Below are positions 11,123 through 58,879 of a DNA stretch of 64,000 nt, in pieces. The notes beneath the pieces were generated by a model. The model was not told the DNA's origin. It worked only from the letters and a program-made list of their open reading frames with translations, and made no database searches. The stretch is from the NCBI RefSeq assembly GCF_052425735.1, contig NC_135766.1, forward strand, positions 12,896,001 through 12,960,000. Direction: 5' to 3'. Numbering within the stretch: the stretch's first letter is position 1; each line of letters opens with the position of its first letter. The position numbers were made by a program, and so were the translations under genes. This stretch comes from Oculina patagonica. Its lineage: Eukaryota.

Positions 11123-12317
11123 TACCCGTATAAGTATTGTATTGTATTGGAGTAACCCCCGGGGGGGTATTCTACGACTAACGGTAAAGGGGATTAACCG
11201 TTATTGGGGTGCAAAAATATCAGTTTTCAGTGCTTGTTATGTATTAAAGAAATCCAAGAGTGCCCATCTCCCTTACCTGCAAGCAAACCCCTAGATATTT
11301 GACTTTTTTGAATCAATGATATGATTGGTCAAATTTTCCACCGTGTAGATGCACTATAAAAGGGATAGCTCCTCCTCCTCTTTGTCACAAATTCCCTGTT
11401 TCAATGAAAACTGAGGTGAACACTTCAACAGAGAACTGAAAAGGTAGAACTAATAATGATTTATTATATTTTTCCAGTTATTTTGCCCATGAATAATTTT
11501 TATGGATATCAATTAAACTTTGCAGACAATCCTTTAGCTTGAGTCCACGGCGACTAATCTTTCTTTAATAGTCATATGGTTGGTCAAATGTCAGGTGAAG
11601 TTTTGCATCAAATTCCCCACTATATGGAGATAGTTATAGACATAACTTCAAGTCAAATGCCTGTTGTTGCTGTTGTTGTTTTTTGTTGGGGATGGAGGGG
11701 GGTGCTCTTGGATTTGACATATATATATTATTTTAAATAATCAGTATTTATAGAATTTTAAATTTATATTCTTTAATCACACAGATCCCTGAGACTGGGA
11801 ATTTCAAGTCAGAATGTGATATTTTGGACATTTCTTCTAATTGCTGGTAAGTTTGTAAACAGTGCAACAATTTCAACCAGGACCATTAATATTGCTTGAA
11901 ATACAAAATAAAACAATCTGAGTTTAATTTGATGATGAGACGGTCAATCAATAGAACTATTACTGACCAAAGTGAAGTTGCTCAAGCTCTGAATTTTATT
12001 GGCATTAAACTAATGTAAAAATATTTTAGAGCCAGCAAAGAGTCAAGAGCATTATCTGAGCCTCAACAAAAGGTCATTTTTGCCAGCTGTAATAACTATG
12101 CAGCCATGAATGGATTGAACACACCGATTTGTTCGACACGAACTCACATTACGTGATCAATGTCACGCAACAGATCTAAATCACAACATTCCTCCCCTCT
12201 AGGATTACAAACTATTTGTCCTAAAACTTGCAATCACTGGAACAACAAAAAACAGAAACTTATGTGTTCTCTAATAACAAACAGTCCCTGTGATAATGTC
12301 ACGATTAACACAGGTAG

Positions 12318-13859
12318 TAGACTGCAAAACAGTCGTTTTTTCTCTTAAGTCTCTTCGAAAAAGCGCGAATTTAAGGCGCGAAGCGCCGAATGTTGAGGCG
12401 CGAAGCGCCGATCGTTTTGCGAGGCGAGAAAAAATTTAGTCAGTAATTTTCAACTGTAACCTTGTGTAAGCACAATAATGTTCAAACAATACATGTACGT
12501 TTTGCACACATAACTGTTTGCATTTAATTTCTACGAATGCTGGAAAACCAGCAACACAGGTGAATTAAAAGAAGGCATATAATTTATTAACAATAGAAAG
12601 CAAAACTTACCACTGCAGAAAGATCTCAAGACTGAAAGGTTTCCGTACTGCTCTCTAAATGGCTTTTGTGATTTCTTCTTCCTTTTTGAATCAGTTCCCC
12701 TAGAAAAACATTCAATCAAATATTCTTTTGGTTAAAAATTATGTGTATGTATGTATTATAATTTGTTACATTTCAAGTCGTATCAAAGTTACAATAATCT
12801 TCAAGTTGAACCTTGCAACAAATTTGACCTGATTCAACACTAGACGATAAAACAGCAGCATACAACAAGTCCACAAACTGACAAAGATTTGTCAATATAG
12901 CATGATTGAACTTCGATTGAACATGATTAAACTTCGATTTTAAAATGCCTTCAAGAAAATATAAAGATAAGCTTTCACAAAGCTTAAAAGTTATATAAGC
13001 TCAAGGTTAATTACGGCGCAACTTTGCCACAATTTGGCAAGCACATAAGCTATTAAAACATTTCGATCAAATAAAAAACCTACCACGTTAAAACAGTGTG
13101 TGATTCATCAACAACAATAAGGGACAAGGAGCGACGAAAAGGACAGTCTTCCTTCAACAATGATGTGAACTTCTCGTTCAAGACTTGTTCGGCGGCTGCA
13201 TAAACGACCTGAGTTTCGCCATTCTTTACGGCATTTAACGTCTCCACATCGAAACGCAGTTCAGCAGCAGTAAGATTGAACTCGTTTGATTTTATCTGCT
13301 CTTCCACAATACTCTTCAAAGGAGAAATTACTATGATAGTCGGCCGTTCGATCGAAGGAAGTGCTCCATTCAGCGAACTTGAAGCTCTGCTCTTGGCCAA
13401 AACAAACAGTTGGAATATTAAACTTTTCCCGAAACCCGTCGGTAGCACTGCAAAAACATCCTTTCCCACCAGAAGTGATTCAACAGCTGCCTTTTGCTCT
13501 GCTTTCAAAACGAAACCCAAATCTTTCGCAATCGCATCCAAATCAACATCTTCCATCTCGTTCCCGCGAAGAGCATGTCTTACTGTTAAATTGATGCGGT
13601 ATCGAATATCTTTGATGAGGTGCGAAGAAAATTTTGTTGACAGGTAATGTCATAATTGACCAATGGGAATTTTCCGTTTCTGGGAGAACGGGAAATTCGA
13701 AACGAAATCAACGTATGTAAAGCCGACAGTCGTAACTTTTAGCGTCTCTCCCCAGTCTCACTCAGAGTTTTGACATCGGCTCCAGACCTCTCGCTGCCGT
13801 TCGAACAACCGAGCGCGTTGACCGAGCGTTCGCAAAAGATACGACTGTTTTGCAGTCTA
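12318..13859 (-). mobile_element. AcademH-like non-autonomous DNA transposon nested in the retroelement
   Basis: TIR TAGACTGCAAAACAGTCGT...ACGACTGTTTTGCAGTCTA with a flanking duplication CAGGTAG (12311-12317, 13860-13866). It carries a RecQ-type helicase fragment. Confidence 0.75.
13083..13556 (-). pseudogene. RecQ-like SF2 helicase, N-terminal part (transposon-borne, truncated)
   Basis: LKAEQKAAV, VLPTGFGKSLIFQ (motif I), ISPLKSI (Ia) and LIVVDESH (II). The ORF ends at a probable GTAGG splice donor, and motifs III-VI were not found. Confidence 0.85.
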
Positions 13860-16800
13860 CAGGTAGTCCCTCAGATATCCTGGTCTGACCCTTTTCCGCA
13901 CAGGGCGTGTCCTTAGAGGACTTGACTCGAAGGGTGTCTGGGTAGGTGTTGCTGGTGTTGCCGGTGGAGCCTTAGGAACATAAGTCGGATGGCTTACAAC
14001 AGGGTCAGGTGATGTTACATGAACATCTGGCAAGGCTATCGGCGTCACGCTGGGTGTGTCGCCTGCAACTGGCTCTTCCACAACCTCATTCTCACGGCGT
14101 CGAACATGGTCCTGATGCCGCCGAATGACAGTTTCGTCGTCTAGCTGGACACGAGTTGACACCGGACCGGTTTTTATCCACTATGGTTCCTGACATCCAA
14201 GTGTTCTTGTGCCGGAAATCTTTAGCATACACAGCTTGACCTTCTACTACATCCCGTTCCTTGGCATGGTAATCGTGTGCGGTCTTCTGTTGAGACTGTT
14301 TATCTCGCCCTTTGTTTGCTACGCTTGGAGTCAGGCGATTAAGCTGTGGGTAGCTTCCGTCGCATGAGTAACTCAGCAGGTGGAACTCCTGTCGTGCTAT
14401 GCTGTGTGTTCCTGTAGCTGAGGAGAAAGCGTGATAGTTTGTCTGGACGCTGCCCTCCTCCATCTTCTCATAGCCTTCCTTAAAGATTCGCACAGCCCGC
14501 TCCGCCAAGCCATTTGAGGCAGGGTGAAACGGTGACACCTTGATGTGCTTAATTCTATTATTCTTCATAAACTCCTGGAATTCTGAGCTGGCAACATTGC
14601 TGCCATTGTCGCTAACCAGTGTTGCTGGTAGGCAAAAATCTCTCTGAGTTTCTCGATGGTGGCGCTGGACGTGGTGGACCTAACCTGAAATCATACCCTC
14701 CCTCCCTACTACTGCTGCGGGGGAAGGAGGGCATGATACATTTGCTTGTCGAAAGTCATGTAAAAAAAAAGATTCTGGTTTTTTGTCTGATTGGTCGAGA
14801 AACAATACTCAATGGAGCGGTGTGGACTGATTGATTGTCGTATTTCAACGAGACTTCCGGTCAGAAGCTGGTAATGGCAAAGACGAGTCACGTTTACTGC
14901 GAGGACGAGTTCTTTTCTACGTTACTGTGAAGCCCTAACAGATTTCAAGTGTAACTCTCTGAAGGCAGAACAAATAGAGTGAGCGACAATGCGTAATAAT
15001 TTTGGTTCCGTGAAGATGTTTTTGTTGTTCTTCGAAAACAATATTCAAGAGATGTTGGAATGTTACAAAAGCGACCGATCCTATCTGCCGTAAAACAGCT
15101 CTTGTCGGTGAATTCCTTTGTGTGTGTGTGTAAGCTGAAATAAAGGGACGGCATCCAGTACAACTGATAAATATATGTTCGCAAGCGCCATCTCACCTTG
15201 CTACTAAAAGCATTTTTATCTTAACACGGCGAAGTTTAAATACAGGCTGTACATATGTACAATTTTTCTCCAGACGTTTTCACGCCTTGTGGAAATCCGA
15301 GTCTCGAATTTGCCGCTTACTACAAAGAGTGGTTTGACAGTTCGACGACACATCAGTTTATTTAAATTAGGGGGCGGCTCGCGGCCGGTTAAATAAATGT
15401 ATCAGGCGTTCTTTTTTCCTCTCGCTTTCGTAAAAAGAAAAAAGAACGCCTGATCGCAGGTTATGTTGGACCTCATACGATGCACTTCCAACCACTTTGA
15501 GTATGCATCTACAACCACATTTCTCCTTTGTAAGGCCCTGCATAGTCAATGTGAATCCTTGACCATGGAAGTCCCGGCCACTCTCAGGGGTGCAACGGCA
15601 CTCTGCTGGTGCACTCCGATTTAATTGACATTTGTCGCAGATTTTCACTTTCTTGACGTAGCTTTTGCTAGGGCTTTCATGCGAGATTCACCAGGGTGGG
15701 CCTCGTGCAGTTCAGTGAGCACCTTTGATCTTTCCTGCGGTGGTACAATCATTCTGGCTCCCCAAAGTACACAACCATCTTCTACGCTCAATTCGGTCCG
15801 CTTGGTGAAGTAAGGGTTTAGCTCTTCAGAACTGTTCTTAGTCGGCCATCCTTCCAAAATGAAATTAAGCACTTGTGAGAGGATTGGATCCCTCTTGGTC
15901 CACTCTTTGATGTGACCACTGTGTACAGGTGTGCCTTCCAAATTTTCCATTAACAAGATGGTTTCACCTGGTACTGGAACTGAATCAGGCATCTCAGGCA
16001 AGGGTAGCCTACTTAGGCCATCTGCATTGCCATTGGTCTGGCCGGCCTTGTATGATATGTTATACTCGTAAGCAGACAAGGTAAGTGCCCATCGCTGGAT
16101 TCGCGGTGATGCAAGGGCAGAAATCCCTTTCTTCTCATTCAAGGGTTTATGATCGGTCTTGATGGTGAATGGGTGTCCATAAAGGAACTGATTGAACTTC
16201 TTGACGCCAAACAAGGGTTGAGTAGTTCCTTCCAGCTGCATTTAGGGATCTGGACATGTATCCGATTTGTCGTCCAGCTCCACCTTCCACCTTGTGGAAT
16301 AGGACTGCTCCCACTCCTTAATCGGACGCATCGGTGGCAAGGATAAATTCCTTTGAGGGGTCAAAATGGACTAGCAACTTGGCTGATTGCAACAGTTCCT
16401 TAGCTTTCTTAAATGCCTCTTGCAGTTCTTTTAGCCACTGCCATTTTGATCCTTTCTTAAGAGCTGGTGTAGAGGCTCCAGGACGGTTGCTACATCAGGC
16501 AAGAATCGATGGTAATAGTTGAGCATGCCCAGAAAAGCTCGCAACTGACTGACGTCCTTTGGCTCTGGTGCATTCTTTATTGCATCAACCTTCGCTGCCA
16601 CAGGTTGGATGCCATCACCATTGATTACATACCCACAGTATGTGACTTGTGGCTGCATTAACAGACATTTTGCCAGGCGTAGCCTTAATCCTGCATCGGA
16701 GAGCCTGCTAAGCACTGCTTCTAGGTTGGCTAGATGATCTGTGTCATTCTTTCCACTGAGTAAGATATCATCAACTCGCACTACAACATGGGGAATGCCT

Positions 16801-18547
16801 TGTAGTAAGTTCTCCATTGTATCCTGGAAAATTCCGGGCGCTGAAGAAACCCCAAAGGGAAGTCTATTGTATTGATAGAGTCCCTTATGAGTATTGATTG
16901 TAGTAAATTTCCTTAACTGTTGGTATGCCTGTGACATATCCAATTTGGTGAATTAGTTTCCTCCGCCAAGTGTGGCAAGCAGATCCTCAGTCTTGGGGAT
17001 CGGGTAATTCTCTACCTTGGAGACTTGGTTGACGGTCCACTTATAGTCACCACAAATACGCAATGATCCGTTTGTTTCACCACTGGAACAATGGGTGCTG
17101 CCCATTCCGTGAATTCTACTGGAGATATTATGCCCTCACTTTCTAATCGATCCAGTTCCTGTTCAACTTTTGCTTTCAGGGCATAAAGTACTGGACGAGC
17201 TTTCATGAACTTGGGTGTGGCCCCTGGGTCAACATAGATTTTGGCTTCGGTGCCCTTCAGTGTACCAAGTCCTTCGCCAAAAACATTCTTGTGTGCTTCT
17301 AGGATCCTCTGTAGCTGAGGGTTAATCTCCTGTATGTTAAAGATACTGTTCCAATTAAACTTAATCACTTGAAGTCAGTCCCTTCCAAGAAGGTTTGTAC
17401 CAGGACACTTCACTACCATGGCTGGCAAATCATGCTGTTGATTTTGGTACTTAACAGGAATCAGCACCTCTCCTAACACTGGTATTTTCTCTCCTCTATA
17501 CGTGCTCAATATGGCCTTGGAACTCTTTAACTCTACTTTGTCACCTAACTTGCTGTATGTTTGTTCATTTAGCACAGTTCTGGTAGAACCAGTGTCAATT
17601 TCGAAATTGTGCGGTTCACCACAAAGTTCGACACTTACTGCAAACGCCTTTGCTCTCCTTCCGTCCCGAATGTGATACATGGTTGCTGCATAAACATCTT
17701 CTTCCCCGGAAAATTCGTCCACTAAATGCGTAGACTGCTTCTGGTTCCCTTTTGTTTGCCCACTGTCTCGTGAGGGTGGTTTAGTTTTCCGTGTTCTGGA
17801 ATCGGTTCCTTTACTCGGCGTTTTCTTGTAATTTTTCTTGCCATAACAAACTTTGGACAGGTGCCCTTTTCTCCAACATTTAAAACACTGAGCATCTTTG
17901 AATCGACAGGCTGAAGCTTCGTGTTTCTCTCCACAACGGTAACACTCAGGATCTGCACGACGATCTTTGTTATTCTTGTCACAAGCGCCAACTTGATGTA
18001 CCTCGCTGGGGGTCGTTTCGGACTGGATGTCAACCACGTGCTTCGCTGCCAACCCTTCTCCGAGAGTGATTTCCTCGGCCTTTTTCAGAGTTAACTCCCG
18101 TTCTGCCAGTAATTTCCGCTTTATTTTCTTGTCATTAATCCCACAGGCTAATCGGTCTCTCAGCATTTCCGGCAAAGTCTCCCCGAAATTGCAATGTTCG
18201 GTAAGCTTACGTAACTCCGCCACATTCGCTGCAACTCCTTCGCCTTCGTTTCGATTTCGGCTGTAAAATTTGAAACGCTCCACTTTTTTACTCGGCTTGG
18301 GCGAAAATTGCTTTTCCAATGTATCGACAATCTTCTTAAAAGTTGTCTCCGCTGGTTTTGCTGCTTGGAGTAAATCCCGCAGAAGTGCGTATGTTTTGCT
18401 CCCGCAAACGCTGAGTAAGATCGCTCGTTGTTTCCCCGCGTCACGTTCTACATCGTTTGCCAAAAAATACTGTTCGAATCGTTCAATATACTGGGTCCAT
18501 GACTGATCCGATTCTCTGAATTCGCCTATCTAACCGTAGGTCGCCAT
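13860..18547 (-). pseudogene. Fragmented gag-pol: zinc knuckles, protease, RT, RNase H, integrase
   Basis: ORF pieces include CYRCGEKHEASAC, IDTGS, LPFGVSSAPGIFQ...VDDIL, TDHKPL, LHEAHPG and PFHPASNGLAERAV. There are many frameshifts and stops, including a TAG four codons after the ATG at 18547. Confidence 0.93.
14681..15463. mobile_element. AcademH-like non-autonomous element inside the integrase region
   Basis: Termini TAACCTG...CAGGTTA. 9-bp TSD TGGTGGACC/TGTTGGACC with 1 mismatch. Each end carries its own subterminal hairpin. Confidence 0.7.
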
Positions 18548-19419
18548 TCCTACTCGAATCTAGATGGAGTTTTCCCCGTCGCCAAAATGTAATAACCATG
18601 CAGCCATGAATGGATTGAACACACTGATTTTAATATTCGACACGAACTCGCATTACAAATCACGTGATCAATGTCACGCAACAGATCTAAATCACAACAC
18701 CAGCACAGGGGTAGAGGTAGCGAGCGACACAACCTTAAAATTATACTGGCAACACAACACATTGGAATTCTTTGTTAACGCCTTGCCTTAATTATTACAG
18801 TCAAAATACTCAACGGATTGCATTATTCATTTCAAAAATTCAAATTTAATTTGAATATTGTAAATCATCCAACCGTAAACACGTGAACAGGTGAACATGT
18901 CAAAAATTACCCAATTTGATTGGTTAATTTTTGACAGGTTTACGTGCTAAAAGGATGTTGGCTTCCTTTAATAACTAAGGAGTTAACAATTCTAGGAAGC
19001 CAAATAACATAGAATAAATTACAATAATTATTAGGGTCAGAAAAACAAAACAAAAAATACAACCCAAACATGCACTCATCTCTAACTGAAAAGGGAAAAA
19101 AATACAAATCAAGGGGGAAAGAACTAAAATTATACTAGGAATGAAGTCTTAAATAAGATGAATGAATAAAGCTAAAAAGCAGCAAATAAATCATTGAAAA
19201 AGCAAAAGCAAACAAATATTTGTACAAAAATTCTTGTTTTTTAATTTTCTTAGAGGTTGACTTTCTATCTTTCTCAAGGGAGTTTCATTCCTTTTTTCCT
19301 TGAATGAAAATATTAAAAATTCCATAATAATTATTAGTTCTAGCACGGGGCAAATATTAATAATATTGATTTGCTGCACTTTGTGTATTGTAGTTATCGT
19401 AATGTTAAGGACTGAATAA

Positions 19420-19830: not shown

Positions 19831-20329
19831 TGCAACTGTTTCCCATTTTAATGTTAGGTGGCCATAAAAGAATGACTGTTTTAACCAAAACCAAAACCAT
19901 ATTATTAAAAAAATATAATAATAGTGATTCAATTTATGGCATGTGATAATCCTGAGTCAGAGTGTTGTAATCATCTGTACAGGTGCCAATTTGTTGAACC
20001 TGAGGATCAGGATGTGAGTTATCATGTGTAAAGTTAACAGGTACATTGTGAACATTGTTAAAACCCAATGAAATTAATATATTATTTTATATTTTTGTCA
20101 TTTTGGTGTTCTGGGGAATTTGGAATGTTCTAGGTTGCACTGCCCCCCTATTATTATTCTATCAGATGATTAATTACCCTGCAAGCAGCAAACTCAGACT
20201 ACGGTCAATATAATACCTTAAATTGTTGTTATAGGTGGGAGGCTGGGATGAAGGTCATTGTGAGGTTTAGTGTGCCTGTAGTTCTGTTCTTCACAACTAT
20301 TACAAAATTATTCAGGTGTCTGGAAAACC

Positions 20330-20550: not shown

Positions 20551-20967
20551 CCGTCGATAAGCCTAGGAGGGTTTCCACAAAAGTTACCGCCACATGCACA
20601 GAGCAATCTAGAAGATCAAGCAAATTGTTTATCACATGCTTGTCCGCTTACTCTAAAACTGAGAGAGTGCAAGTCAAGGTGTAACTATACGAATCACTTT
20701 CACTGAATGAAGCCTATATCTCAATGTTTTCTCGATGTTTTCAGTGCTGAATAAATGGCCCAGGTGTCTCTTTAGGTGTTCCCCAACCACAGTAATGGAC
20801 ATTTCTCCTGTACATCTGTTGAGCCTGACGTTGAAAGGCCTCTATCAGTTTTGACAATTAAGTCTCTGGCCATTCCTTTGACACATTAATAATACTGGCC
20901 ACTTATTGAACACTGAAAACACAGCCACAAAGTTATAATTACAAGAAGGAACTGACAACAATCTTAC

Positions 20968-23900
20968 TGTTGTGTCTCGCGGAATTGAATAAGTCAAACT
21001 GGTACAACACAACAAGGTTTAATCAAACATGGCGGCTCAATTCAACAACAGGCGCACATGGCATGCGTGCGCATAATAGTAACAAAACCGCAGACCATCA
21101 TGTGCGGCATAGCATTCCTCCCCCCTTAAATCACAATCCATTAATAACGGACAAGTTCAGTTCAGTTACAAGTTCAGTCTCTCTGGTGGCTTCCGTAGCC
21201 GAAGGGGATAACGTCTACATGGTGGTGTTGCCGGACTGCTAACCATGGTTTCGCTTTGACTGCTGAGAGGGCTGTCAGGGGTGTTGTCCACATGTGTATC
21301 TTTGGTCAATGGTTCGTCGATGCCAGTCATAGTGGGAGCCTGTAATTCTTCATTCTCCACACTGCTTGCTGATTGTGGTGTTGCTGTCAACACTGCTGGG
21401 TTTAGTTGCGGTGTGTACTGTTCCTTGTTAAAGGTTGGAGTCACTGCAGACTCTCTGAGCTGATCAACATGTCGTCGCCATACTGTATTGGGTGCGACCC
21501 TGACTTCATAGGACAAGGGTCCCGAGTGAGCTGTGATGATACCCGGAACCCACTTGCTTCCAGCTCGGTAGTTTCGGGCAACGACAGCTTGGCCTACCTC
21601 TAGCTTTCTGGTAGGGCTGTGACTTGACCGTAACTCTTGATCTTGCTGTTTGTCTTCCACTCGCTTCCGTAAGTTAGGCTTCAGTATATCAAGCCTTGTC
21701 CTGATGTTTCTCCCCATGAGGAGCACAGCTGGCGTCTCTCCAGTCAAGGAATGTGGGGTTGATCTGTAGGCCAGCAAAAAGTTTGCCAGCTTCCAAGAGA
21801 TAGATTTCTTTTCCGTCAGCGCTGCGCGGAGAGCTTGCTTGAATGTCTGTACAAAACGTTCAGCCATTCCATTTGTGGCTGGGTGGTACGGAGCTGACTT
21901 AATGTGCTTAATACCATTACTTCTCATGAATGCTTCGAATTCATCTGCTATGAATTGAGGTCCATTATCACTTACAAGCTGCTCTGGCAAGCCGTGTGTG
22001 GCGAAGAGCTTTCTTAGTTCCTCAATTGTTCTGCTGGCAGTTGTAGTAGTCATCGGTATCACTTCGGGCCATTTAGAATGTGCATCTACAGCAATCAGAA
22101 ACATAGTTCCTAAAAATGGGCCAGCAAAGTCAACGTGGATGCGTTGCCATGGGCGTGCTGGCCACTCCCATGAGTGCAGCGGAGCGGTCTTAGGGTTGTT
22201 CTGGGTAAGTTGACAGCCAGTGCACCCTTTTGCTACTTCTTCAATTGCTTTGTCCATCCCTGGCCACCACATGTAGCTCCTGGCCAAGGCCTTCATCTTA
22301 ACAATTCCAAGGTGGCCTTCATGGAGTTCAGCTAACAGTTGTGCCTGGTACTTGGGTGGGATTATTACTCGTGAACCCCACATAAGGCAGCCATCCTGTA
22401 TGGTGAGTTCATCTTTCCTCCTCTGAAATGGCTCCAGATCCTTCTCACTAACGGTTGGCCACCCTTGCTTTGTGTTTTCCACCACACGTGACAAAACCGG
22501 ATCTCTCTGAGTTGCTTGACGGATCATATCTGCATTGACTGGCAGCACTTCTATCTGTGATACTTGAAAAATCTCCACTGGGTCATCTACTTCCTTGTCG
22601 CAGACTTTCTTTAAAGGTAGGCGTGACAATCCATCCGCGTTTCCATGTTGGGTTGTGTTCTTGTACTCAATACTGTACTCAAACCCTGCTAGAAACAACG
22701 CATAACGTTGCAAGCGAGCAACTGTCATTGCTGGTATTCCTTTCTTGGGATTAAAAATTGAGGTCAGGGGCTCATGATCTGTCACGAGTGTGAAATGACG
22801 ACCAAACAGGTAAAGGTGGAATTTCTTCACTCCCCAAACCAAGGCTAAGGCTTCTTTATCAATTTGGGAGTAATTTCTTTCTGCTTTGGTTAGGGTACGT
22901 GATGCGAAGGCTATGGGTCGCTCTGAGCCATCCTCCATGATGTGCGATAAAACTGCCCCGATTCCGACTGGTGAGGCGTCACAGGCTAGTCTCAAAGGCC
23001 TTCCTGGATCATAATGGGTGAGTACCATATCTGATGTGATTAGCTTCTTTACTGAGTGGAAGGCCTCCTCGCACTCTGTAGTCCACTTCCATCGTTTTGC
23101 TTGCTCCAAGAGCCCGTTAAGGGGATTGAGTGTGGTGGCAAGGTTTGGCAAGAACTTGTGGTAATAGTTTACTAGGCCTAAGAATGAACGGAGTTGCTGG
23201 ACATTCTCTGGTCTTGGGGCGTTAACAACTGCATTAATTTTATCTTGGGTCTTGTGTAATCCATGCCGGTCTACTTCATGCCCACAGTAAGTGATCTTCG
23301 TCTGGAAAAACTCGCACTTCTCGCGGTTTGCTCGTAGGCCATTTGCTTGTAGCCTCTTCAGTACTTCCTCCAGATTGTCGAGGTGCTCTTTGTCATCTTT
23401 TCCTGTGATAATCATGTCGTCTAGGATGCAACTAGTTCCTTCGACCCCTTCTAAGATTTGATCCATGGATCTCTGCCAAATTGCTGGGGCTGAGGTGATC
23501 CCGAATACTAGGCGGTTGTATCGGTACAACCCCTGATGGGTGTTAATCGTCAAGTACTCTCGTGACGCTTCCTCCACTTCCATCTGATGGTAGGCCTGTC
23601 TGAGGTCAATCTTGGTGAACTTCTGTCCTCCTGCCAGCTTAGCGAATATGTCATCGATGCGTGGAAGTGGGTACTCCTCTGTCTGAAGCTGGGGGTTAAC
23701 TGTGGTCTTATAGTCGCCACAAATTCGAACTGTGCCGTTTGACTTGGCAACTGGCACAATAGGCGTCGCCCAGTCGCTGAATTTCACCTTGTGCAGTATG
23801 CCTTCTCTTTCTAGACGTTTCAGCTCCACCTCGACCTTAGGTTTCATGGCGTATGGGACAGGCCTTGCTTTACAAAACTTTGGTTGACTGCCTTCCTTCA

Positions 23901-25396: not shown

Positions 25397-27201
25397 CTTA
25401 CAAGAAGAATAAGATCTGCAAGGCTATTATATGCAGTGCCAGGGCCAAACTCTCATTCGACACCTTTGAGCGGTGTACAAAGTCTGTCATGTGACTGTCT
25501 GGTCATCCAAGTTCACTTTCCATTAATCTAACTATCATCTTTGATTAAGAGACACCCTGGTGTTGGATATTAACGAATAGGAGTCATGGTATTCCTGTGG
25601 TTTAATAATTATGTTCGTGTCCTAGAAAATGGTATAATATGTACTGTGTGGTGTAATAAACTCACCCAGAAGAAATTTGTACCCTGGGCTGTGTTATACT
25701 TGTGGGGAAAATGTTCCATGTATTTTGTTGTAGGTATGATGTGATAATGTAACTGGGATGGTACCTGTATAGTATGCTGAATGCCCCATGTAATATATTT
25801 AGACTACTGTTACATAACCGAAAGTTGTGTTAAGTTATTGCACCATATGTACCCAGGATGCTTAGCGAATAAAGTGTTGTGTTGTTCAGCCATATTGAAG
25901 CTGTGTTGTTTAGAAGCTATCTTTAGTATTCTTTACTGATATGCCACACCCCATATACAGTGAATATCCCTGGCAGGGTATACCTTCAGCTTGGGGTGTG
26001 GTATACCTACAATGTACCATTGGATTAGGTATTTGTTCTGGGGTATGTTGTTTACATTTTTAAACCTGTGGGAGTTGCCATAGTATGTTTAGGGTCTATG
26101 TTGAGTTATCCTGAAAGAGAATAGACCAGTTGCAGTTTGTATGTGGCTATGACCATGACAAAGTGTCCGCTAACCAGAGGTGTCCACACACGGGAGGTGT
26201 CCATTAGTGCAGTTTTTACTGTATAACAAACACCTTTAAGTTGATCAGTCTGTAACCTTATATGACGTACATTTTGTATTTTTAGAATCTCAAAATGAGT
26301 CAAACTGCTTTAACAAATATTAAAAATCCAAGTCACCAAGATCTCAGGTAAGTTCTGGTCACAAGAGTTATGCACACTCAAAAATAGCAATTCTATCTAC
26401 CATGGCAGTGATTTCCCATAAACAGTTTAGAAAAAAATTCTAAAGATCAAAAATTTCTTCTAGATATTGTGTAAACATAGATCTCAGCCAGTTAAAACAT
26501 CCAGTACAAACATTACAACACATACAGCTGTACTAGGGAAATTAGAACAGTAAATGAAGTAATAAGCAATATTACAAACAAGCCAAGCTAATCGGCAGGC
26601 CGAGCACAACTTTACAGCATTTGCTATAATTGCTGACCACAATTGAAAGGCATTGAAATAATCTTTTAAACTTGATTAAATCTAAAACTACTCCACTGTA
26701 ATTACTTTTTAGGTGCGGGAATGAATTTGTTCTCCTTTGGTACATGCTTTTCACCTTAACTCATGTGAAATTTATAAAAAGGGGTAAAGGGCTGATAATT
26801 TTGCTTCCGTTGGGGAACAGTGTTAAGGTATGAACTTTTTATTTAGAGTAAGATGAAAATAAACATTCATGTAGTTCTGTTTGTTACCTTGTAATTAATA
26901 TGAAACTAACGTACGTCCCTGTGGTCAGTAGCATGCTAAAATATATAGAAAAAAAAACTTACTGCGTTCTCAAGCTTACGGGACTACCTTGAATGTGCAA
27001 TTTTTTCTTATGTCTGTCTTAAAAAGAAAAAGGCACTTCACCTTACATGTCTTTTAGTGGTTTAAGGTGGATCGATTATCAGAAGTAGAACTATCTTAAT
27101 TCCATCATGTTCAACAATAAATGTAAAAAGAAAACGAAATATGATTTTCTTCCTTCACTTAGGTACAGTTGGAGGTCTAAACCTTTCCACATTGGATAAA
27201 G

Positions 27202-34083: not shown

Positions 34084-34124
<41 letters not shown>

Positions 34125-37135: not shown

Positions 37136-37208
37136 GGTGACTAGCACACCAGAGATGGAAGACAGAAGAGAAAACAAGAGGTTAGACATTAGCAGTAACG
37201 TTTGTTAG
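37136..37208 (+). CDS. Duplicated predicted terminal exon B
   Basis: Same acceptor and phase, giving W-VTSTPEMEDRRENKRLDISSNVC-stop. Confidence 0.45.
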
Positions 37209-44492: not shown

Positions 44493-45394
44493 ATACCCCA
44501 GGGGTAAACGTCATAAAAATGATGAGATCATAATTTAAAAATAGAATAGGGACAGTATTGCCTTCATCTTGTTTATTGTCGCAAAATAAAATAATATTTT
44601 GATATAGGTCAAAGAATCTGCATTCAGAAGTCTTTTTAAAGGCAAAATTATCGGTATATTTAAGCTTTGTGGAGCAGCCGACCGAAAAGTCATGGGAGCG
44701 ATTATTTCTCGTTTCCATTCTAACTCGGGCAATAGTTCGAATATAATGTATGCAGGTTGGCGCAATGTTTTGCTGTGAAAGACCATTGTCGCATTTTCAT
44801 ATTCCCGGCATATTCTGTTCATCTCTGGTAAGTTTTTGCTTCTAGTCCAAACTAGAATTAAATAACTTCGTGATCCTTAATCAACTAACGCCAAGATTTA
44901 TCGCACGCGAATTCGCATCAACTTGAACTAATTAGTTTACGAAATCAACATTTCACTGGCACTTTTTTGTTTAACGAAATTACGTTTGTGAAGATCCATG
45001 ATGTCATAATTGAACTTTCTACTCTATGGCGGGAGCGGTTTTCAGCATAACACAGAACAGGCATGAGTATTTATTTCGGTCAAAGTTTTTAGCTTTGTAA
45101 TTATGCAAGTTGTCTTGTCGCATACATTTAGTACTGCTAACATACCGGTAATTGTTTTTAAAACAATGGTAAAGACTCGATGTGCTCTAGTGAACAAAGC
45201 ATGACCAATCGAAAAGTTAAAACAATAGAGTGAACGCGCTTCAGTGACCTCGGATATAAACAAGGATTTCGAACCGCTTATGATAGAAAACATATCGGTA
45301 CAGAGTTTAAAAAAAATCATACACTAAACACACAGATTGTAAGTAAGATAAACTTTTATTTCGATCGTTCAACATGGCATTACAATGATTTAAT

Positions 45395-46603
45395 TTAATA
45401 ATCCTCTTCTTGTCCTTTGGAAGATTTGTAAGGCGAGTTTTTATGTATTCGCCGGGAGCGTCTTGAAGGCCTTTTCGGTTCATCATCCCAGTAATTTACG
45501 AATCGGATTTGAGGTCGTTTCCGCTTTTTAGGCGGAGATAATGATTCCACCGTGGGAGGAGGGGTCAAGTTGCCTGCGGAAGATATTTGTTTCTGCCCTT
45601 CGGTTGCTTCTGGTATAGAATTGAGCTGGTGTTTGTATGTCAAAAACCTGTTTTGCAGCTGTATGTATTGCCTTGCTTTTTCGTCTTCTGCAAGGTCTCC
45701 ACGAGAGAGAAAGCCATCCATATTGTTCTGCAAGCGTTGCGTTTCCGAAAGTACCGGGGGAATCATCAAGTTTTGCTGCTTAAGATATTGCACTAGTTCC
45801 TTAGAAACGTTGCCTTCTACTTGGCCTTTATCGAATCGTTCTTCACCAGGTAATACGTTCGTTCGCAATCTGCAACTGTCCTGAGTGGTTGGTTTAAGAT
45901 AAACAAACAGATAACCAAATGGTCTCTGTACCGCGTCTTCATACTGTTTCATAAACCAAGCAGTTTGTCCAGGATACATTTGTTTTGCTAGTGTCAAAAT
46001 CTGCAGTTTGTCGCGGGAGTTTTTGAAAAGTACCAAGTAATGGCTGTTTAAGCTGATGCTTCGATTGCCTTTGCCTTGATGGAAGAGGTTTTGCACAATG
46101 TAAATGACACTCAAGTTGCGATGATGCGATCCTTTAGTAAACAGGTTCACGACTCGGTTATCACTTCCGGCTTCGATCATTTGGTCGTCGATGACAATCA
46201 AGTTTCGTTTATTAACATCAAAGTAAGAATCTTGTTCTAAGGTCTCAGGGATACCCTTGCTAAATTCAATTCCAGGTATCGCCATCAACAACTCGCTGTA
46301 GGCCGGTTGCCACTGAGAATAGCACCAAACAATCCTCTCAGGGGGTAGGTGAATTGTCTTGTGAGCCTGTTGCAACAAAGATTTAACCCAGAGCGTCTTG
46401 CTCGAACCTGTCATTCCCGCCACCATAGACACCACCATACAGGTAAACGGATGCCCAAGTGAAACCGCTGACACTTTTCTCGAGAACTCCGACATAGTTT
46501 GAAATGGAGGAAAACCGGAAGTACTATGTTTACTGCTCATGTGTCTTTGCATGCTATCTTTCCTTGAAAAATTTTTTTGACAAATAGGACAGGACCAACT
46601 CAT
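45395..46603 (-). CDS. C2H2 zinc finger plus Polinton A32/FtsK-like packaging ATPase plus C-terminal extension (~402 aa, possibly inactive)
   Basis: MSWSCPICQKNFSRKDSMQRHMSSKH; HPFT...AGMTGSSKT (altered Walker A); LIVIDD; LFTKGSHHRN; IVQNLF; RPFGYL. The likely start is the ATG at 46603, not 47182. Confidence 0.85.
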   Translation of the reverse strand: MSWSCPICQKNFSRKDSMQRHMSSKHSTSGFPPFQTMSEFSRKVSAVSLGHPFTCMVVSMVAGMTGSSKTLWVKSLLQQAHKTIHLPPERIVWCYSQWQPAYSELLMAIPGIEFSKGIPETLEQDSYFDVNKRNLIVIDDQMIEAGSDNRVVNLFTKGSHHRNLSVIYIVQNLFHQGKGNRSISLNSHYLVLFKNSRDKLQILTLAKQMYPGQTAWFMKQYEDAVQRPFGYLFVYLKPTTQDSCRLRTNVLPGEERFDKGQVEGNVSKELVQYLKQQNLMIPPVLSETQRLQNNMDGFLSRGDLAEDEKARQYIQLQNRFLTYKHQLNSIPEATEGQKQISSAGNLTPPPTVESLSPPKKRKRPQIRFVNYWDDEPKRPSRRSRRIHKNSPYKSSKGQEEDY

Positions 46604-46651
46604 GTCAACTCTCTCACAACTCAACGAGAACTGAATTTCTGTGCAATGTTT

Positions 46652-47183
46652 CACAATTATATTGTTTATCTCCACCACCACCACCACAATTCTATTGTTT
46701 AACTTCACCACCACCACCAAAATTCTATTGTATAAGTCAACCACCACCACCACCACAATTCTATTGTTTATCTCCACCACCACCACCACCACCACCACCA
46801 CCACCACAATTCTATTGTTTAACTCCACCACCACCACCACAATTCTATTGTTTAACTCCACCACCACCACCACAATTCTATTGTTTAACTCCACCACCAC
46901 CACCACAATTCTATTGTTTATCTCCACCACCACCACAATTCTATTGTTTAACTCCACCACCACCACCACAATTCTATTGTTTAACTCCACCACCACCACC
47001 ACCACCACCACCACCACCACAATTCTATTGTTTATCTCCACCACCACCACCACCACAATTCTATTGTTTAATTCCACCACCACCACCACCACCACCACCA
47101 CCACCACCACCACAATTCTATTGTTTATCTCCACCACCACCACCACCACCACAATTCCATTGTTTAACTCCACCACCACCACC
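46652..47183. repeat. Compound minisatellite ACAATTCTATTGTTTAACTCC + (ACC)n, about 14 units
   Basis: Read directly. It lies between the divergent ORFs of the element. Confidence 0.95.
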
Positions 47184-47233
47184 AGTATTAATTATAAAGA
47201 AAAACCTTACTACCGTTAGTTCATTCTTTAATC

Positions 47234-47560
47234 ATGACTCGTGTAGTAAAGAACAATCGAGGTTTCCTTCAACTTTTAGCTGACTGTCCTTCTCATCAAC
47301 GCCAGTTTCTTCTTAAGACAGCCACTCCACAACAGATGCACGCATTAGTGCAACTTATTCATAACGTTCTCAAGGAAAACATACCAATCTCTGAAGAAGA
47401 TAAGCGTAAAGTGATACCCTACAAGGATGCTCTAGTCAACCTCGTTGAACCAAATGTTCCCTTCAAGACAAAGAAACGAATTCTTGTACAAGAGGGTGGA
47501 GGCTTTATTCAAGAATTATTGACCCCTGTTATAAGTAGTTTGGGACTTCTTATGTTATAA
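47234..47560 (+). CDS. Small Polinton-type protein with a C-terminal GG-F motif and amphipathic helix
   Basis: KKRILVQEGGGFIQELLTPVISSLG resembles small Polinton/adintovirus proteins and adenoviral protease-cleaved pX-type precursors (recognised from memory). Confidence 0.65.
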   Translation: MTRVVKNNRGFLQLLADCPSHQRQFLLKTATPQQMHALVQLIHNVLKENIPISEEDKRKVIPYKDALVNLVEPNVPFKTKKRILVQEGGGFIQELLTPVISSLGLLML

Positions 47561-47622
47561 GAGCATAGCTGCATCCTTAAAATTGATCATTTATATCTTG
47601 CTTTTAACGAGTGCTGGTCAAT

Positions 47623-48453
47623 ATGAAGAGAAAGATAGACTGGGACGATGAAGAGGAGGAAAGCGGACAAGAAGATAGCACAACCTCTGATGACGAGAGC
47701 GATGACGAGGAACCCCGGATAAACGATGTTTTAAATAATCTTTCCCAAGCTGTGTCTAGAAAGTATGCTTCTGAACTGCTGCATAGCATGGCCACCTCCA
47801 AAGATATCTTGTTTTGGACACCACGCGGACAATTACTCCGAAATCAACGCATAATACCAGTAACAAACATTTCAGAACTGGTCGAGTATGTGCTACTTCC
47901 ACATAACGATGATGTAGCCAAACCCCGCGCACTCAATACCTTTTCAGAGGGACTGGCGGAGCTGGGAGTTAATAAGCGTTTGATAAAGAATAAGAAAGTT
48001 CTAAGCGATATATTACAAAAAGAACAAGCCTATCGTGATAAAGAGGAAGAGGAGGATGACAATAACTCAACTGGCAGTAGTGAAGAGGAGGGAACAGCTT
48101 CTGAGGAGGGTAGTGGAGATGAGGAATCTCAAGGGAGCGAGAGCGACAGCGATGAAGAAGCCGAGAATAGCGATTTCGAAAATGTAATTCAGACAAAAGC
48201 TAGTTCTCGATGTGAACACTGGGAGGGTTCCAATGTATATGATACTGCGATCATGAAATGCCCGAAGTGCTTTTGGGAAGATAACTGTAAAATTTGTCCT
48301 ATATGCGAGCACGAAATCCCTCTTGACCGAAAGCACGGAAAGGATACTTTGCGTCGATGTTACGATTGCGGAGCTATAACACACAAGAACGTGGAGACCT
48401 TGCAGAAGACGAAAAAGCAAGGCAATACATACAGCTGCAAAACAGGTTTTTGA
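47623..48453 (+). CDS. Polinton-associated protein with acidic tracts and a Cys-rich C-terminus, truncated or fused at 48390
   Basis: W-x3-G-QL...IPVTNISELV...P...F...L...GV...LIKN block, D/E-rich tracts and CxxC pairs. The last ~20 codons derive from the inverted arm. Confidence 0.6.
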   Translation: MKRKIDWDDEEEESGQEDSTTSDDESDDEEPRINDVLNNLSQAVSRKYASELLHSMATSKDILFWTPRGQLLRNQRIIPVTNISELVEYVLLPHNDDVAKPRALNTFSEGLAELGVNKRLIKNKKVLSDILQKEQAYRDKEEEEDDNNSTGSSEEEGTASEEGSGDEESQGSESDSDEEAENSDFENVIQTKASSRCEHWEGSNVYDTAIMKCPKCFWEDNCKICPICEHEIPLDRKHGKDTLRRCYDCGAITHKNVETLQKTKKQGNTYSCKTGF

Positions 48454-51264
48454 CATACAAACACCAGCTCAATTCTATACCAGAAGCAACCGAAGGGCAG
48501 AAACAAATATCTTCCGCAGGCAACTTGACCCCTCCTCCCACGGTGGAATCATTATCTCCGCCTAAAAAGCGGAAACGACCTCAAATCCGATTCGTAAATT
48601 ACTGGGATGATGAACCGAAAAGGCCTTCAAGACGCTCCCGGCGAATACATAAAAACTCGCCTTACAAATCTTCCAAAGGACAAGAAGAGGATTATTAAAT
48701 TAAATCATTGTAATGCCATGTTGAACGATCGAAATAAAAGTTTATCTTACTTACAATCTGTGTGTTTAGTGTATGACTTTTTTTAAACTCTGTACCGATA
48801 TGTTTTCTATCATAAGCGGTTCGAAATCCTTGTTTATATCCGAGGTCACTGAAGCGCGTTCACTCTATTGTTTTAACTTTTCGATTGGTCATGCTTTGTT
48901 CACTAGAGCACATCGAGTCTTTACCATTGTTTTATAAACAATTACCGGTATGTTAGCAGTACTAAATGTATGCGACAAGACAACTTGCATAATTACAAAG
49001 CTAAAAACTTTGACCGAAATAAATACTCATGCCTGTTCTGTGTTATGCTGAAAACCGCTCCCGCCATAGAGTAGAAAGTTCAATTATGACATCATGGATC
49101 TTCACAAACGTAATTTCGTTAAACAAAAAAGTGCCAGTGAAATGTTGATTTCGTAAACTAATTAGTTCAAGTTGATGCGAATTCGCGTGCGATAAATCTT
49201 GGCGTTAGTTGATTAAGGATCACGAAGTTATTTAATTCTAGTTTGGACTAGAAGCAAAAACTTACCAGAGATGAACAGAATATGCCGGGAATATGAAAAT
49301 GCGACAATGGTCTTTCACAGCAAAACATTGCGCCAACCTGCATACATTATATTCGAACTATTGCCCGAGTTAGAATGGAAACGAGAAATAATCGCTCCCA
49401 TGACTTTTCGGTCGGCTGCTCCACAAAGCTTAAATATACCGATAATTTTGCCTTTAAAAAGACTTCTGAATGCAGATTCTTTGACCTATATCAAAATATT
49501 ATTTTATTTTGCGACAATAAACACTGATGAAGGCAATACTGTCCCTATTCTATTTTTAAATTATGATCTCATCATTTTTATGACGTTTACCCCTGGGGTA
49601 TTGTGACGTCACTATTCTATTTTTAGATTACGCCCCGATGATGTAATTTTTCTATTTTTAGATTATGCCCGATGATGTAATTTTTTCTATTTTTAGATTA
49701 CGCCCCATTTTTGATGACGTCACTTACGCCCCTATGACGTCACCCACTTAATTAATTCCACAAAAAATAATTAATTCCACAAATAAAAGGTAATTTTTTC
49801 TATTTTTAGATTACGCCCCATTTTTGATGACGTCACTTACGCCCCTATGACGTCACCTACTTAATTAATTCCACAAAAAATAATTTATTCCACAAAGAAG
49901 GGGTTAATTCGGTCCTTCCCTCACTACTTGTTAGAAATTACTTGCTGCCGAAATATTCATAAAATCTCCAGGAAGTGAACGCGAAAGCAAACTTGAAGGT
50001 GTTTATTTTAAAAACTCCGCCAAGGGAGTCTATCCTCATAATTGCTTTCCCCCACCCCTGAAAACCATCCCTCACGTACCGGTTGGCCAGGCCTACAACT
50101 CTGCACAAAACTAGCTACCCCCTGGACTAGGCTCAATTTCCAGGGGGGACACCCCTATGATTTTTACGGGGTGCTCATTATACCTTTTAGGGGTACAATT
50201 TGTGGATTGGTACCGCTTAGTTAGGGTGCTTAATCCTAAAATAACCGCCGCTAGAGTTGTTGGTGGTAGATGAACCAGGAACGGTCATTGTTTTCGTAAC
50301 GCAAATAACTTTGATTTCTGAATTTTTCACTTGTAAACAGTCATTCAGTCATCAAATTGCCAGTGCCAGTTTATTTGTTGTCTAGAATTAGAACCTCTTA
50401 GGGGCTCCTCTAGGAAAAGCGGAAAACCGCTTACCAAAGCTGGTTTAAACCAAAGTAGTCAACGCTCGTCAACGCTGTAAATATTTACTTGTCTTTCTCC
50501 AGACATCTAACTATAACTGACTCTGTTCAATCCGTTTTAAGAGGTGACAATATATCACGGAACCGTGTTGGTTTATATCGAGCCGCACTATATGTACATT
50601 ACTCCACAGTTCCCAAGTCCCAACTCAGTGCCATTCCAGCTAATTGTATGCGCTGAGGCCTCTGGGACTGATTTTTGGCACTCGATTGCTCAGATTGCAA
50701 ATTTGAGGTGTGACTGTAGCTGTGTTGAGTTATTTTCGTTTGGATTCACTGAACATTGATGAAATCCAGTTATTTTGCAGCAAGGTTAGTTCAGAAGCAA
50801 CAAGTCGTGTTCTTTCTTATAGCAGCCCGACATTTCTTCAGTGTTTGTCGACTCGCTGATCTGCTAACTGCAGTAAAATCACTTCCGCTTTCGAATTCAT
50901 CAGTTGTGCATTTCATATTTTGAACGAAACTTTTGTCATTTCTGAGCATTGTTGTCATCTATACAGGTCCCAAGCCGTGGAAAACAAATTCAAGATGTGA
51001 TTTTTCTCCGATTAATTCTCTGAGGTAAGCAATTGCTGTGGAAAACCTTCGAATGAAGCTTGAGTTAAACTTTTTCCGAACCACACGCCCCCCACTTACT
51101 CCCCGAATAGTCCGTTTCTTTTGTCCAATTGATTTATCAATCAAGGGAATGCATTCCCTTAATAGTCAAAAAATATTCTGTCATTTGTTTTACTCGTTTT
51201 TACCTCTCCTTGAGGGGTTCCGTCAATTGTGCTTGGCTTAGGGTTTGGGAATCATAGTTCCCCT

Positions 51265-52245: not shown

Positions 52246-52286
52246 ACTTCCCCTCTGCATCCTGGGGGGGGGGGGGGGTTGTGATA

Positions 52287-56206: not shown

Positions 56207-56451
56207 AATAGCCCTTATGCATGTTTACGTTATATATATATATAGACTGGCTAGCTAGTTTCACCACCACGCCTCACTTTCGAAGTGCCAAATTGTGAAT
56301 TTTATCATAAACGAATTCCCAAAGCAGCAAAGATGAAAAGAATACCCACGTGAAAACTGCATGAAAGCAGCAGAGATTTGACAATAATTCGCGTAAACGA
56401 GGCTTGGTGGTGAATTTTGAGCATATGACGTTATCATGCATAAGGCCTATT
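56207..56451. mobile_element. Small MITE inserted into one copy of an old duplication (~54940-55220 and ~56140-56600)
   Basis: TIR AATAGCCCTTATGCATG/CATGCATAAGGCCTATT. The other copy has the empty site. Confidence 0.65.
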
Positions 56452-58879
56452 GTTCACACTGGCCCTTTGCTAAGATTTATGTTCACTTAATCCTAATAGA
56501 ACTCATCAAATATAATTTGTCTCTCTTGTTTATACTTTGTATTACACCTTTCTTACTTCCCAGGAGTATTTTGCTTTGATTTCTATGCAGTGATTTCTTG
56601 TTGAGTTAAACTTGATATTTTTTTCCTTCATATGTAACATTTATTCCTGTACAGACTGTAGTTAGTTCCCAGTCCTGTTTGGATCTACTGATAGGTTAAT
56701 TGCAACAGATCCCATCCACTTGCCTGATGGCATTATGCAATGACGTCATTACTTTAAATAAGTTAGAGCAGTCTAAGTGTTTTATATTAGTGACACCCTA
56801 AAAGTTGTTAATTTTTATTTCAAAACCTACAGTTTTTTGTTCATGCATTTTTAAGCCAGATGTCAAGTATAATTTTCCCATTTAGGTTCAAAAAAATGAC
56901 ACTTAGGTCCTACTTGAAATCAAAGAATCTGTTTAAATGCTAATAAGGAGCTCGAAGTTGAACAGGATTAAATAAGTTGATCAGTGTTTTGAACAAAATG
57001 TCTGCATCTCTTCTGATTGTCAATTGTTATCACTTACAGGTGCAGGTCCCAAGCTGTGGAATGCAATGTCAGGATGTGATTTTTCATACATATTTTCTTC
57101 TAATTTCAGGTAAGATCTGACTTATGGATCGAGGTTAATAAAATTAATTATTTGATGATATGCTCAATCAAAAATTATGGATCAATTTAACTCTCCAGGC
57201 TCAGCATGAGTTAACTCATGTGTCAATCGAATTTTTTTTAGTGTTTGATTAGTTAAGAAAATTCCGCTAAACACATGGGCAATAAAGGCATTAAAATAAA
57301 GTTACCAAAGAGAACTCATAGCAGTTGGTGATAGTTTAAATAACAGTTAGGAAAATGTTAGCCAAACTTGAGCTCTTGAGCTAACCCTGCAAGAGAAAAA
57401 TAAAATTGAAATTGTCCATATTTTTGTCAAAATGAACGTTTTATGTTCAAAACAAAATAGCAAACGTTTTAACCAATTTTAGGAGGTTTAACATTAACTC
57501 TTTCAAGAATCCGGCTTTAGAATTAAATCACCGGATGTAAGACTTAGAGAAATGAATTACAATGAGCTGTTTCAAATGGTGTAAAAAATGTTATAAGAAT
57601 ATTTTTGGTAATTAATTTTTTGTTGAGGCATCAAATTTATTATAATCTGTTTTTCATACTGCTGTTATCATCATATGCAGCTCTCAAGTTGTTGAACCTG
57701 GGAATCAGGATGTGAGTTATCATTGCGTAAAATTCTTTAAATAACAGGTAGGCAATTTTGTTTATGTTACAATTTATTATAAAGCAGGCCTATCTTTCTT
57801 CCAAGATACATTAATTTTAACAAGACAGACTGGGGCAAGCCTGGTTCATAAGGTTCATAAGTCACTAGCTATGATTTTTTTTAACCAGCCAGCTTGCTGC
57901 AAGGGAAGTTCAAAATTCCTCGCAGGTTTTTTTGTTATGTGAGAAACTTAGGTACCTTGTGCTCTCAGCCAATCTCAAGTTTCGATGCTTTTATTTTTCA
58001 CAAAATCCCATTTAAATGTTTTTTTTTGTTGAAATTTGACGCATTTTTGATGGTGTCCTTTAAATGCACAATTTAATTTAAGGAAATTCCCCATTGCGCA
58101 TCCCTACTACGCATAATTTCACGTGGAATTAGTGCGCGCGTATTAAAAAATGGCAGCTTTAACTTTACGGCTAGACCACTTCAGACAGGTAAATCGTCAT
58201 TTTCTCAAAAACGAGTATGGCGACCTACATGTATCATTTTTTCTGTTGTTTTGAATTGAGTAGCAACTTTCTTTCTGTAGAATAAATATGGACCAATTCT
58301 CAGTGTTGAATAAGAAATAATCGTCGAACACGTGAATTTAGCAAGCAATCGTGACTACCGGTACATGTATAATCATGGTAATTTTATAAAGATTTATTAG
58401 GTATAAACAAGGTGCTGTTGCTCCTAAATGAGCATTGGCACGCCCCACTGTTATTTCAAAATTTAAGTTCCTATAACATAAACAGTCAATAGGCAAAGTC
58501 TCACAAAAATCTCTCTACAGGTTCTATTTCAGTGGAAAACCTTGAGACAATTGTTAGCCTATTGGAAATCTCGAAATAAAGACAGAATCTTAATACATGC
58601 CAAGCTGTTTTGGCAGTATGTATTATTTACTCATGGGATATTTGTTTTTGATAGGCTTTTCACAGCATTTTAGTATCTAATAATAGGGTTTTGTGAGCAA
58701 AAAACAATTTGCAATAAAATTAATGCAGCTGTGTAAAGTCACGTCACCAGTCTCACCCTGGTGTAGGATATTAACCATATGGGAATTGCATAGTAATGAT
58801 CCTGTATAATATGCCAAGGCAAAGAGTATACACTTAGGATATGCTTTACCGAGAAAGAGGATATAGCTTGCAATATGGT

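Follow-up and report, generated by a model that had tools for sequence, protein, structure and literature searches.

What a family of short exon-like units lying up to 15 kb upstream of two coral genes contributes to their messenger RNAs is the question raised by a 64-kb stretch of chromosome CM126643.1 of the stony coral Oculina patagonica (the whole stretch analysed, hereafter the window). The window holds two tandem HEPN_DZIP3-NACHT-WD40 paralogs, both on the plus strand and each with one very large coding exon. HEPN-NACHT-type genes number in the hundreds in corals, and to our knowledge nothing is known about their control. An initial annotation of the sequence had described six AG/GT-bounded units in front of the two genes, and had read them as a modular 5' untranslated region (UTR) built from duplicated micro-exons, each adding a start-stop upstream open reading frame (uORF), i.e. 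an ATG directly followed by a stop codon. That five of the units are real, conserved, non-coding leader exons with correctly predicted borders is well supported by spliced RNAs from relatives. We lean slightly towards the view that they are old, selectively maintained leader-exon copies of the coral HEPN_DZIP3-NACHT-WD40 family, acting as a start-stop brake; the brake itself is plausible, mechanistically ordinary and unproven, and through it the units may throttle a toxic RNase, as had been suggested.

All six units are present, with AG before and GT after each. Such borders alone are weightless as evidence, and the case for the units is their homology, which joins the following five:

11785-11846, plus strand: U1, an A-like leader exon; start-stop ATGTGA at 11814-11819; 15.4 kb upstream of paralog 1.
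19983-20040, plus strand: U2, a B-type leader exon; start-stop ATGTGA at 20012-20017; second upstream ATG (uATG) at 20024.
50967-51024, plus strand: U4, an A-type unit; start-stop ATGTGA at 50995-51000; syntenic with positions 1128-1492 of L083, a locus of another coral assembly.
57046-57109, plus strand: U5, an A-like duplicate; start-stop ATGTGA at 57074-57079; two other uATGs.
57681-57747, plus strand: U6, a B-type unit; start-stop ATGTGA at 57710-57715; syntenic with L083 8036-8129.

A profile built from these five units and one homologous unit of another coral (L002) was run against both strands of the window and matched only the five, all on the plus strand, with E values of 2e-16 to 7e-23. 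They lie exclusively upstream of the two genes. The ATGTGA core said to be shared by five of the six units is thus carried by true homologues, while the remaining unit, at 26286-26347, lacks ATGTGA and is undetected by any unit profile. The two homologous pairs named in the initial annotation, 19983 with 57681 (type B) and 50967 with 57046 (type A), are borne out by alignments; when the window is compared with itself by blastn, 19957-20035 and 57654-57734 match with 80% identity (E 1e-11), and ~20 nt of flank on the 5' side of the units is conserved too. The extended core TCARRATGTGAKWT has 5 matches in the window versus 0.03 expected; the bare hexamer ATGTGA shows no enrichment there (48 observed, 42.6 expected). 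Consensus acceptor, consensus donor and core are retained by all five units, and each start-stop ATG has a purine (A or G) at position -3, an initiation-competent context.

The joining of the units in RNA is seen in other corals. The relatives comprise 80 homologous loci from coral-holobiont collections and four loci from two genome assemblies; one extra metatranscriptome-type contig found by protein look-up (L002) is identical with L011, one of the 80. An iterated profile drifted to one subclade and no longer detected the units of L005 and L034, which are diverged and were placed by transcript-genome comparison instead. Contig L005 lacks a ~570-nt GT-AG intron of genomic L006, and its 195-nt leader consists of the unit (…CAGGATGTGAG…), a 77-nt exon and the last exon. 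Similarly, L034 lacks a ~1.57-kb GT-AG intron of L033 and keeps CATGTGAG (…GCATGTGAGAG…) in the exon joined to the last exon. In L035 a first exon is followed by an A unit (with ATGTAA) and by the last exon, with borders identical to those at 7605-7668 of genomic L066, while L071 contains an A unit, directly after it a B-like unit (ATGTGA), then further exons and the last exon. The apparently spliced leader of L055, whose upstream exon matched no genomic contig, keeps a perfect GTGAGT within ATGTGAGT. L035 shows in addition, at 118-1365, two tandem HEPN-coding copies before a third start; the contig is a chimeric assembly or else belongs to a family member with a duplicated HEPN.

An ATG-stop is retained in the leaders of L005, L009, L034, L035, L055 and L071, which means that those RNAs do not use the internal GTGA as a donor. 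The caveat that the motif, where it overlaps GTGAGT, may be a plain splice donor accordingly does not hold for these RNAs, the motif being retained in every spliced contig of other corals that carries it. With canonical borders (AG before, GT(A/G) after), joining in the relatives' RNA and a non-coding position relative to the main open reading frame (ORF), the units have the marks of spliced 5' UTR exons. The exon combinations differ among L035, L071 and L005, and three contigs (L057, L061 and L063) begin exactly at the last exon. In O. patagonica itself several RefSeq mRNA products per gene encode one identical protein, which fits alternative non-coding exons. The idea of a modular 5' UTR of duplicated exons stands insofar as homologous units are joined at the predicted borders in other corals; the unit at 26286 falls outside the family.

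The units were also held to be non-coding, which depends on the sequence just upstream of the two start codons:

27163-27201, plus strand: 5' UTR part of the paralog 1 large exon; in-frame TAA at 27178-27180; no uATG.
27202-31770, plus strand: main ORF of paralog 1 (HEPN_DZIP3 - NPHP3_N/NACHT - WD40; RefSeq LOC144666207), extended by small downstream exons.
59274-59325, plus strand: 5' UTR part of the paralog 2 large exon; start-stop ATGTAA at 59292-59297; in-frame TGA at 59317-59319.
59320-63903, plus strand: main ORF of paralog 2 (RefSeq LOC144666208); family-conserved start MAAAAP at 59326.

The TAA reported before the paralog 1 ATG is present, and in paralog 2 the TGA abuts the first ATG. 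Because of these in-frame stops the units can neither extend the main ORFs nor encode the main protein. The family-wide N-terminus MAAAAPSPLASS (MAAAAPSPL) begins within the large exon, where the RefSeq models also start translation, and coding micro-exons or an N-terminal extension are ruled out by the stops together with this position of MAAAAP.

Three further identities were considered for the units and rejected. A structured RNA is ruled out by their fold z-scores (-0.5 to +1.25). A known RNA family is ruled out as well, the units having no Rfam match. The sole Rfam match of the window lies elsewhere, downstream of paralog 1 on the minus strand (34116-34188); it is tRNA-like, scores 31.9 bits, just above the gathering score, and may be a tRNA-derived repeat. 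A transposon or dispersed repeat is, for the window, excluded by the lack of further unit copies on either strand of the window and by a single antisense copy in ~0.5 Mb of related loci.

Constraint on a unit is seen in a third O. patagonica paralog (L085), which lies 2.8 Mb away and whose coding sequence (CDS) has a nucleotide identity of 65% in its body, rising to 77% over the first 600 nt. Its B unit is 81% identical to U2 over the exon and 30-nt flanks and ~95% over the 5' two-thirds; no difference is seen in the 16 nt that follow the donor, and the intron sequence 300 nt to either side falls to ~48%. Unit B is thus a sharp conserved island between distant paralogs and is under selection. 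Comparison of paralog 1 with L084, from another coral assembly, shows conservation around U2, the 26286 unit and the last exon, the U2 region again being a conserved island (83.6% identity over 128 nt); between paralog 2 and L083 the promoter-like block (described below) with U4, and U6, are conserved. In the other loci 14 of 15 profile matches are on the sense strand and 5' of the ATG, and the two subtypes occur in a fixed order, A then B (L053, L058, L066 and L083).

These comparisons bear on the reading of the window units as relics, i.e. decayed pseudo-exons from partial gene duplications or pieces of repeat elements that are outside the present-day transcripts of O. patagonica. Donor and start-stop have been lost in some copies elsewhere (L053_A, L058_B), the syntenic L083 locus lacks a counterpart of U5, and no promoter block was detected in the vicinity of U1, 15 kb upstream of paralog 1, all of which would suit relics. 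We nevertheless consider this reading very improbable, given that the splice sites and core are intact in all five window units, that no copies exist elsewhere in the window or antisense, that U2, U4 and U6 stand out as conserved islands in comparisons with syntenic or paralogous loci, and that several RefSeq mRNA products share one protein.

Directly upstream of U4 lies a further conserved element:

50771-50966, plus strand: promoter-like (or exon 1) block, with the ETS-type CACTTCCGC at 50880-50888.

This ~190-nt block is conserved in L066 (E 3.5e-22), L083 (two copies), L054, L053, L058 and L002, and homologous blocks precede the A units in L066, L053, L058 and, twice, L083. The conserved ETS-type site is ~85 nt from U4, which may belong to exon 1 instead of being a micro-exon. 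Partial copies of the block at 43558-43640 and 39231-39332 represent a degenerate second copy, apparently split by a GIY-YIG-bearing insertion and adjoining a large inverted-repeat element.

A braking mechanism can be outlined as follows. Splicing would join the units to the large exon with the complete HEPN-NACHT-WD40 ORF, probably in an alternative manner. The AUG has a purine at -3 and runs straight into a stop codon, so that a scanning ribosome would initiate and terminate at once, and with up to four start-stops in one leader (for paralog 2 at 50995, 57074, 57710 and 59292) few ribosomes would reach the main AUG. Where termination takes place more than 50 nt upstream of a leader exon junction, the mRNA could also become a target of nonsense-mediated decay (NMD). 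The outcome would be a low basal output of a potentially self-damaging HEPN effector, tuned by the choice of leader exons. We infer the inclusion of the units in O. patagonica mRNAs, and likewise the ribosome behaviour, the NMD and the biological purpose. If all candidate exons are put together, the hypothetical full leader of paralog 2 is ~240 nt long with four start-stops, and that of paralog 1 ~220 nt with two start-stops and a 29-codon uORF. The distances from stop to last junction in these hypothetical leaders are 147 and 85 nt for paralog 1 and 155 and 97 nt for paralog 2, but only 32 nt for the start-stop at 57710 and negative for that at 59292; all of them depend on the exons being truly included.

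The brake is favoured here because start-stops are known to be repressive (PMC13338717) and because plant NLR mRNAs are held low via NMD (PMC7663611). A wider, scleractinian-wide proposal is that a shared exon-borne "start-stop cassette" restrains the HEPN-NACHT-WD40 effectors, that its dose is set by splicing or promoter choice, and that stress or infection, through reduced NMD or altered initiation, releases many paralogs at once, as an independent animal counterpart of the NMD/uORF control of plant NLRs. We put this forward tentatively and regard it as doubtful.

The evidence for selection on the start-stop itself, as read from the aligned copies, is mixed. The best-conserved block over 20 aligned unit copies is TCAgGaTG-TgA, and ATGTGA is still present in the diverged leaders missed by the unit profile (L009, L034 and L055). 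Start-stops make up 8 of the 35 uATGs of transcript leaders and 19 of the 39 uATGs of last-exon UTRs, versus a background of 6-8%, in counts drawn from homologous, non-independent sequences. The last-exon site is the ATGTAA at 59292-59297, 28 nt before the conserved start and with T at -3. Its homologous site in other corals reads ATGTAA, ATGTAG, ATGTGA, ATGTCA or ATATAA, the stop after ATG being TAA in many loci, TAG in L024 and TGA in L035; the paralog 1 subfamily lacks it.

Several observations weigh against the brake, besides the non-independence of these counts. The claim that each unit adds a start-stop holds for the five window units, but only 12 of the 20 copies across several genomes keep ATG plus stop, the variant cores being GTGTAA, GTGTGA, GTGTCA, GTGTGG, ATGCGA and ATGCAA. 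The A of ATG is kept in 75% of the 20 copies and the following TG in 100%. In the L083 copies syntenic to U4 and U6, which read GTGTGG and GTGTGA, the ATG is lost, and among the close B units GTGAGTTA is kept in four of four and ATG in three of four. The last-exon ATGTAA is lost in several lineages (ATGTCA, ATATAA and others), and the whole 52-nt last-exon UTR is conserved, so there is no site-specific constraint signal for it. In respect to splicing, the L002 leader contig looks partly unspliced and L034 runs upstream through the "acceptor" flank of its unit; units can thus also be part of a first exon or of unspliced RNA. The use of the window units in O. patagonica mRNAs is presumed from other species: exact-protein look-ups with both window ORFs and the RefSeq variants returned the genome record only or nothing, with no O. 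patagonica transcript among the results, no short transcript-derived fragment matched the N-terminal 220 aa at more than 87% identity in a search for such fragments, and the Logan and Tara contigs recovered (L086 and L087) are genomic, belong to other subfamilies and are without units. As to the size of the effect, very short uORFs often permit efficient reinitiation.

In a rival reading the core is a splicing signal, be it a 5'-splice-site-like sequence ((A/G)TG/GTGAG) bound by the U1 small nuclear ribonucleoprotein, an exonic enhancer for the cassette exon or an alternative donor, and the ATG-stop is a by-product. GTGAGT is indeed perfect in U2 and U6, the four close B units that keep GTGAGTTA include the ATG-less L083_B, the intron sequence on either side of unit B is strongly conserved, as is typical of regulated cassette exons, and the leaders seem to be alternatively assembled (in L035 from the A unit to the last exon, in L071 from A to B to further exons, and in three contigs from the last exon on). 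The A-type units, however, keep ATGTGA despite weak donor-like sequences (GTGATT, GTGATA), and the variants ATGCGA and ATGCAA preserve the ATG yet destroy the GT. The motif is never used as a donor in the spliced contigs that carry it, including the GTGAGT of L055, and the three diverged leaders beyond the reach of the profile still carry ATGTGA. On balance we hold a splicing role of the core to be rather unlikely.

The same tallies can be read in yet another way, with the exons conserved for some other cause (splicing, transcript stability, an ETS-like CAGGATGT DNA site or a UGUR-type site for an RNA-binding protein) and the start-stop merely tolerated as the least harmful uATG. Such tolerance would explain why start-stops have a high share of the surviving uATGs yet are freely lost in some lineages; TGTRA is kept in 15 of the 20 copies, slightly better than ATG plus stop, and the A unit lies close to the conserved ETS-type site. 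Against this reading, the units are found on the sense strand only, at distances of up to 8-15 kb from one another and from the promoter block, and mature leaders contain them. Moreover, with a purine at -3 in each window unit the ATG would be recognised once in mRNA, and up to four repeats per leader are hard to see as neutral. Tolerance of an idle start-stop is therefore quite unlikely in our judgement, and the start-stop brake is kept as the favoured interpretation.

The unit outside the family has to be described separately:

26286-26347, plus strand: candidate penultimate leader exon of paralog 1, with borders conserved in L084.

Its AG/GT borders are kept in the syntenic L084, but the surrounding ~400-nt region is wholly conserved there. 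The uATG at 26295 would open the 29-codon uORF mentioned above, which ends 2 nt before the main ATG of paralog 1; in L084 the ATG of the unit is ATA. Against the transcript-verified penultimate exon of L006 the acceptor alone aligns. The unit at 26286-26347 is a plausible candidate for a leader exon of paralog 1.

The two genes are 89.7% identical at the nucleotide level, with the similarity beginning 13 nt 5' of the ATG. Their products match HEPN_DZIP3 (PF18738) at the N-terminus with E values of 8e-43 and 4.5e-46 and, centrally, the NPHP3_N/NACHT P-loop NTPase (PF24883) with 6.6e-28 and 1.8e-28, and C-terminal WD40 propeller families match too. In the R-N-x4-H motif of the HEPN domain R131, N132 and H137 are invariant across 27 homologs. 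By these domain matches both paralogs qualify as coral HEPN-STAND (NACHT)-WD40 NLR-like proteins, with a predicted RNase activity. More than 1700 homologs were found, nearly all in coral assemblies, and the DZIP3-type HEPN is described as abundant on coral NACHT proteins (PMC10236652; for HEPN biology see PMC3710099). An in-frame 105-nt tandem repeat of ~3 copies (73-74% matches) lies inside both ORFs, at 27850-28157 and 59974-60284, between the HEPN and NACHT regions. In the RefSeq models the C-terminus of both proteins is lengthened via tiny exons past the large exon, which encode repeated ~15-aa units (…VTSTPEIEDRRENK… twice). In the region 31770-37622 the duplicated blocks 35047-36053 and 36812-37441 probably hold such exons, and duplicated micro-exons thus probably occur at the 3' end as well.

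The long distance between U1 and paralog 1 is largely made up of insertions. About 11 kb of it are opposite-strand retroelements located inside putative leader introns. The one at 20967-25396 (minus strand) has an uninterrupted 1340-aa reverse transcriptase/RNase H/integrase ORF between 100% identical 148-bp direct repeats; that at 12088-18699 (minus strand) is an older remnant with a gag/aspartyl-protease ORF. A 5.8-kb element between the two genes (44166-49928) has 1.54-kb terminal inverted repeats of 99.7% identity and carries a C2H2 zinc-finger ORF (45395-47182, minus strand) and a CCA-rich 33/63-nt tandem array (46652-47184). At 3804-8348 nested tandem and inverted repeats of 99.8-100% identity include arrays with the palindromic ACGGTTAACC x5, and may stem from recent rearrangement or from misassembly.

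Between distant paralogs this short non-coding exon has kept its sequence better than the CDS has, and it marks a regulatory handle that the family shares. If the start-stops act as brakes, they would explain how the cell tolerates many potentially self-destructive RNase-bearing receptors, and the units would be a marker for co-regulated family members. For annotation, these "single-exon" genes appear to have long multi-exon leaders that reach 8-15 kb upstream across transposon insertions.

Start-stop control is a known kind of regulation, and the novelty is a gene family without previously known regulation. Start-stop elements (AUG-stop, "minimum uORF") occur in human ATF4 and hundreds of other human genes, where they hold ribosomes and repress downstream translation more than ordinary short uORFs (PMC13338717), although only ~5% of human 5' UTRs contain them (PMC11057154); the AUGUAA of Arabidopsis NIP5;1 is another such element, as cited in the latter work. 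The coral element shares with them an ATG directly followed by a stop in a leader, in the coral case as read from sequence. It differs in that it rides on a duplicated ~60-nt exon with 2-4 repeats per leader, is common to many paralogs of an expanded gene family, and has six bases that are incompletely conserved among the copies.

Plant NLR mRNAs are kept low through NMD (PMC7663611). Both cases concern STAND-type immune receptors, those of plants being held down by leader features that trigger mRNA surveillance, and in the hypothetical coral leaders four start-stops would have their stop codons 85-155 nt to the 5' side of the last exon junction. The likeness is a functional analogy only, between different kingdoms and with a HEPN effector in place of TIR/CC. 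As in yeast GCN4 and mammalian ATF4, serial short uORFs would gate the main start and could permit a stress-dependent release; the coral uORFs are, however, elongation-free and lie on separate, possibly optional exons, and the logic of delayed reinitiation is not indicated. With conserved alternative cassette exons the units have in common their shortness, the conserved branch-point/3' splice site and post-donor intron sequence, and the varied exon combinations among contigs, whereas the coral units are non-coding leader exons whose alternative use is putative in O. patagonica.

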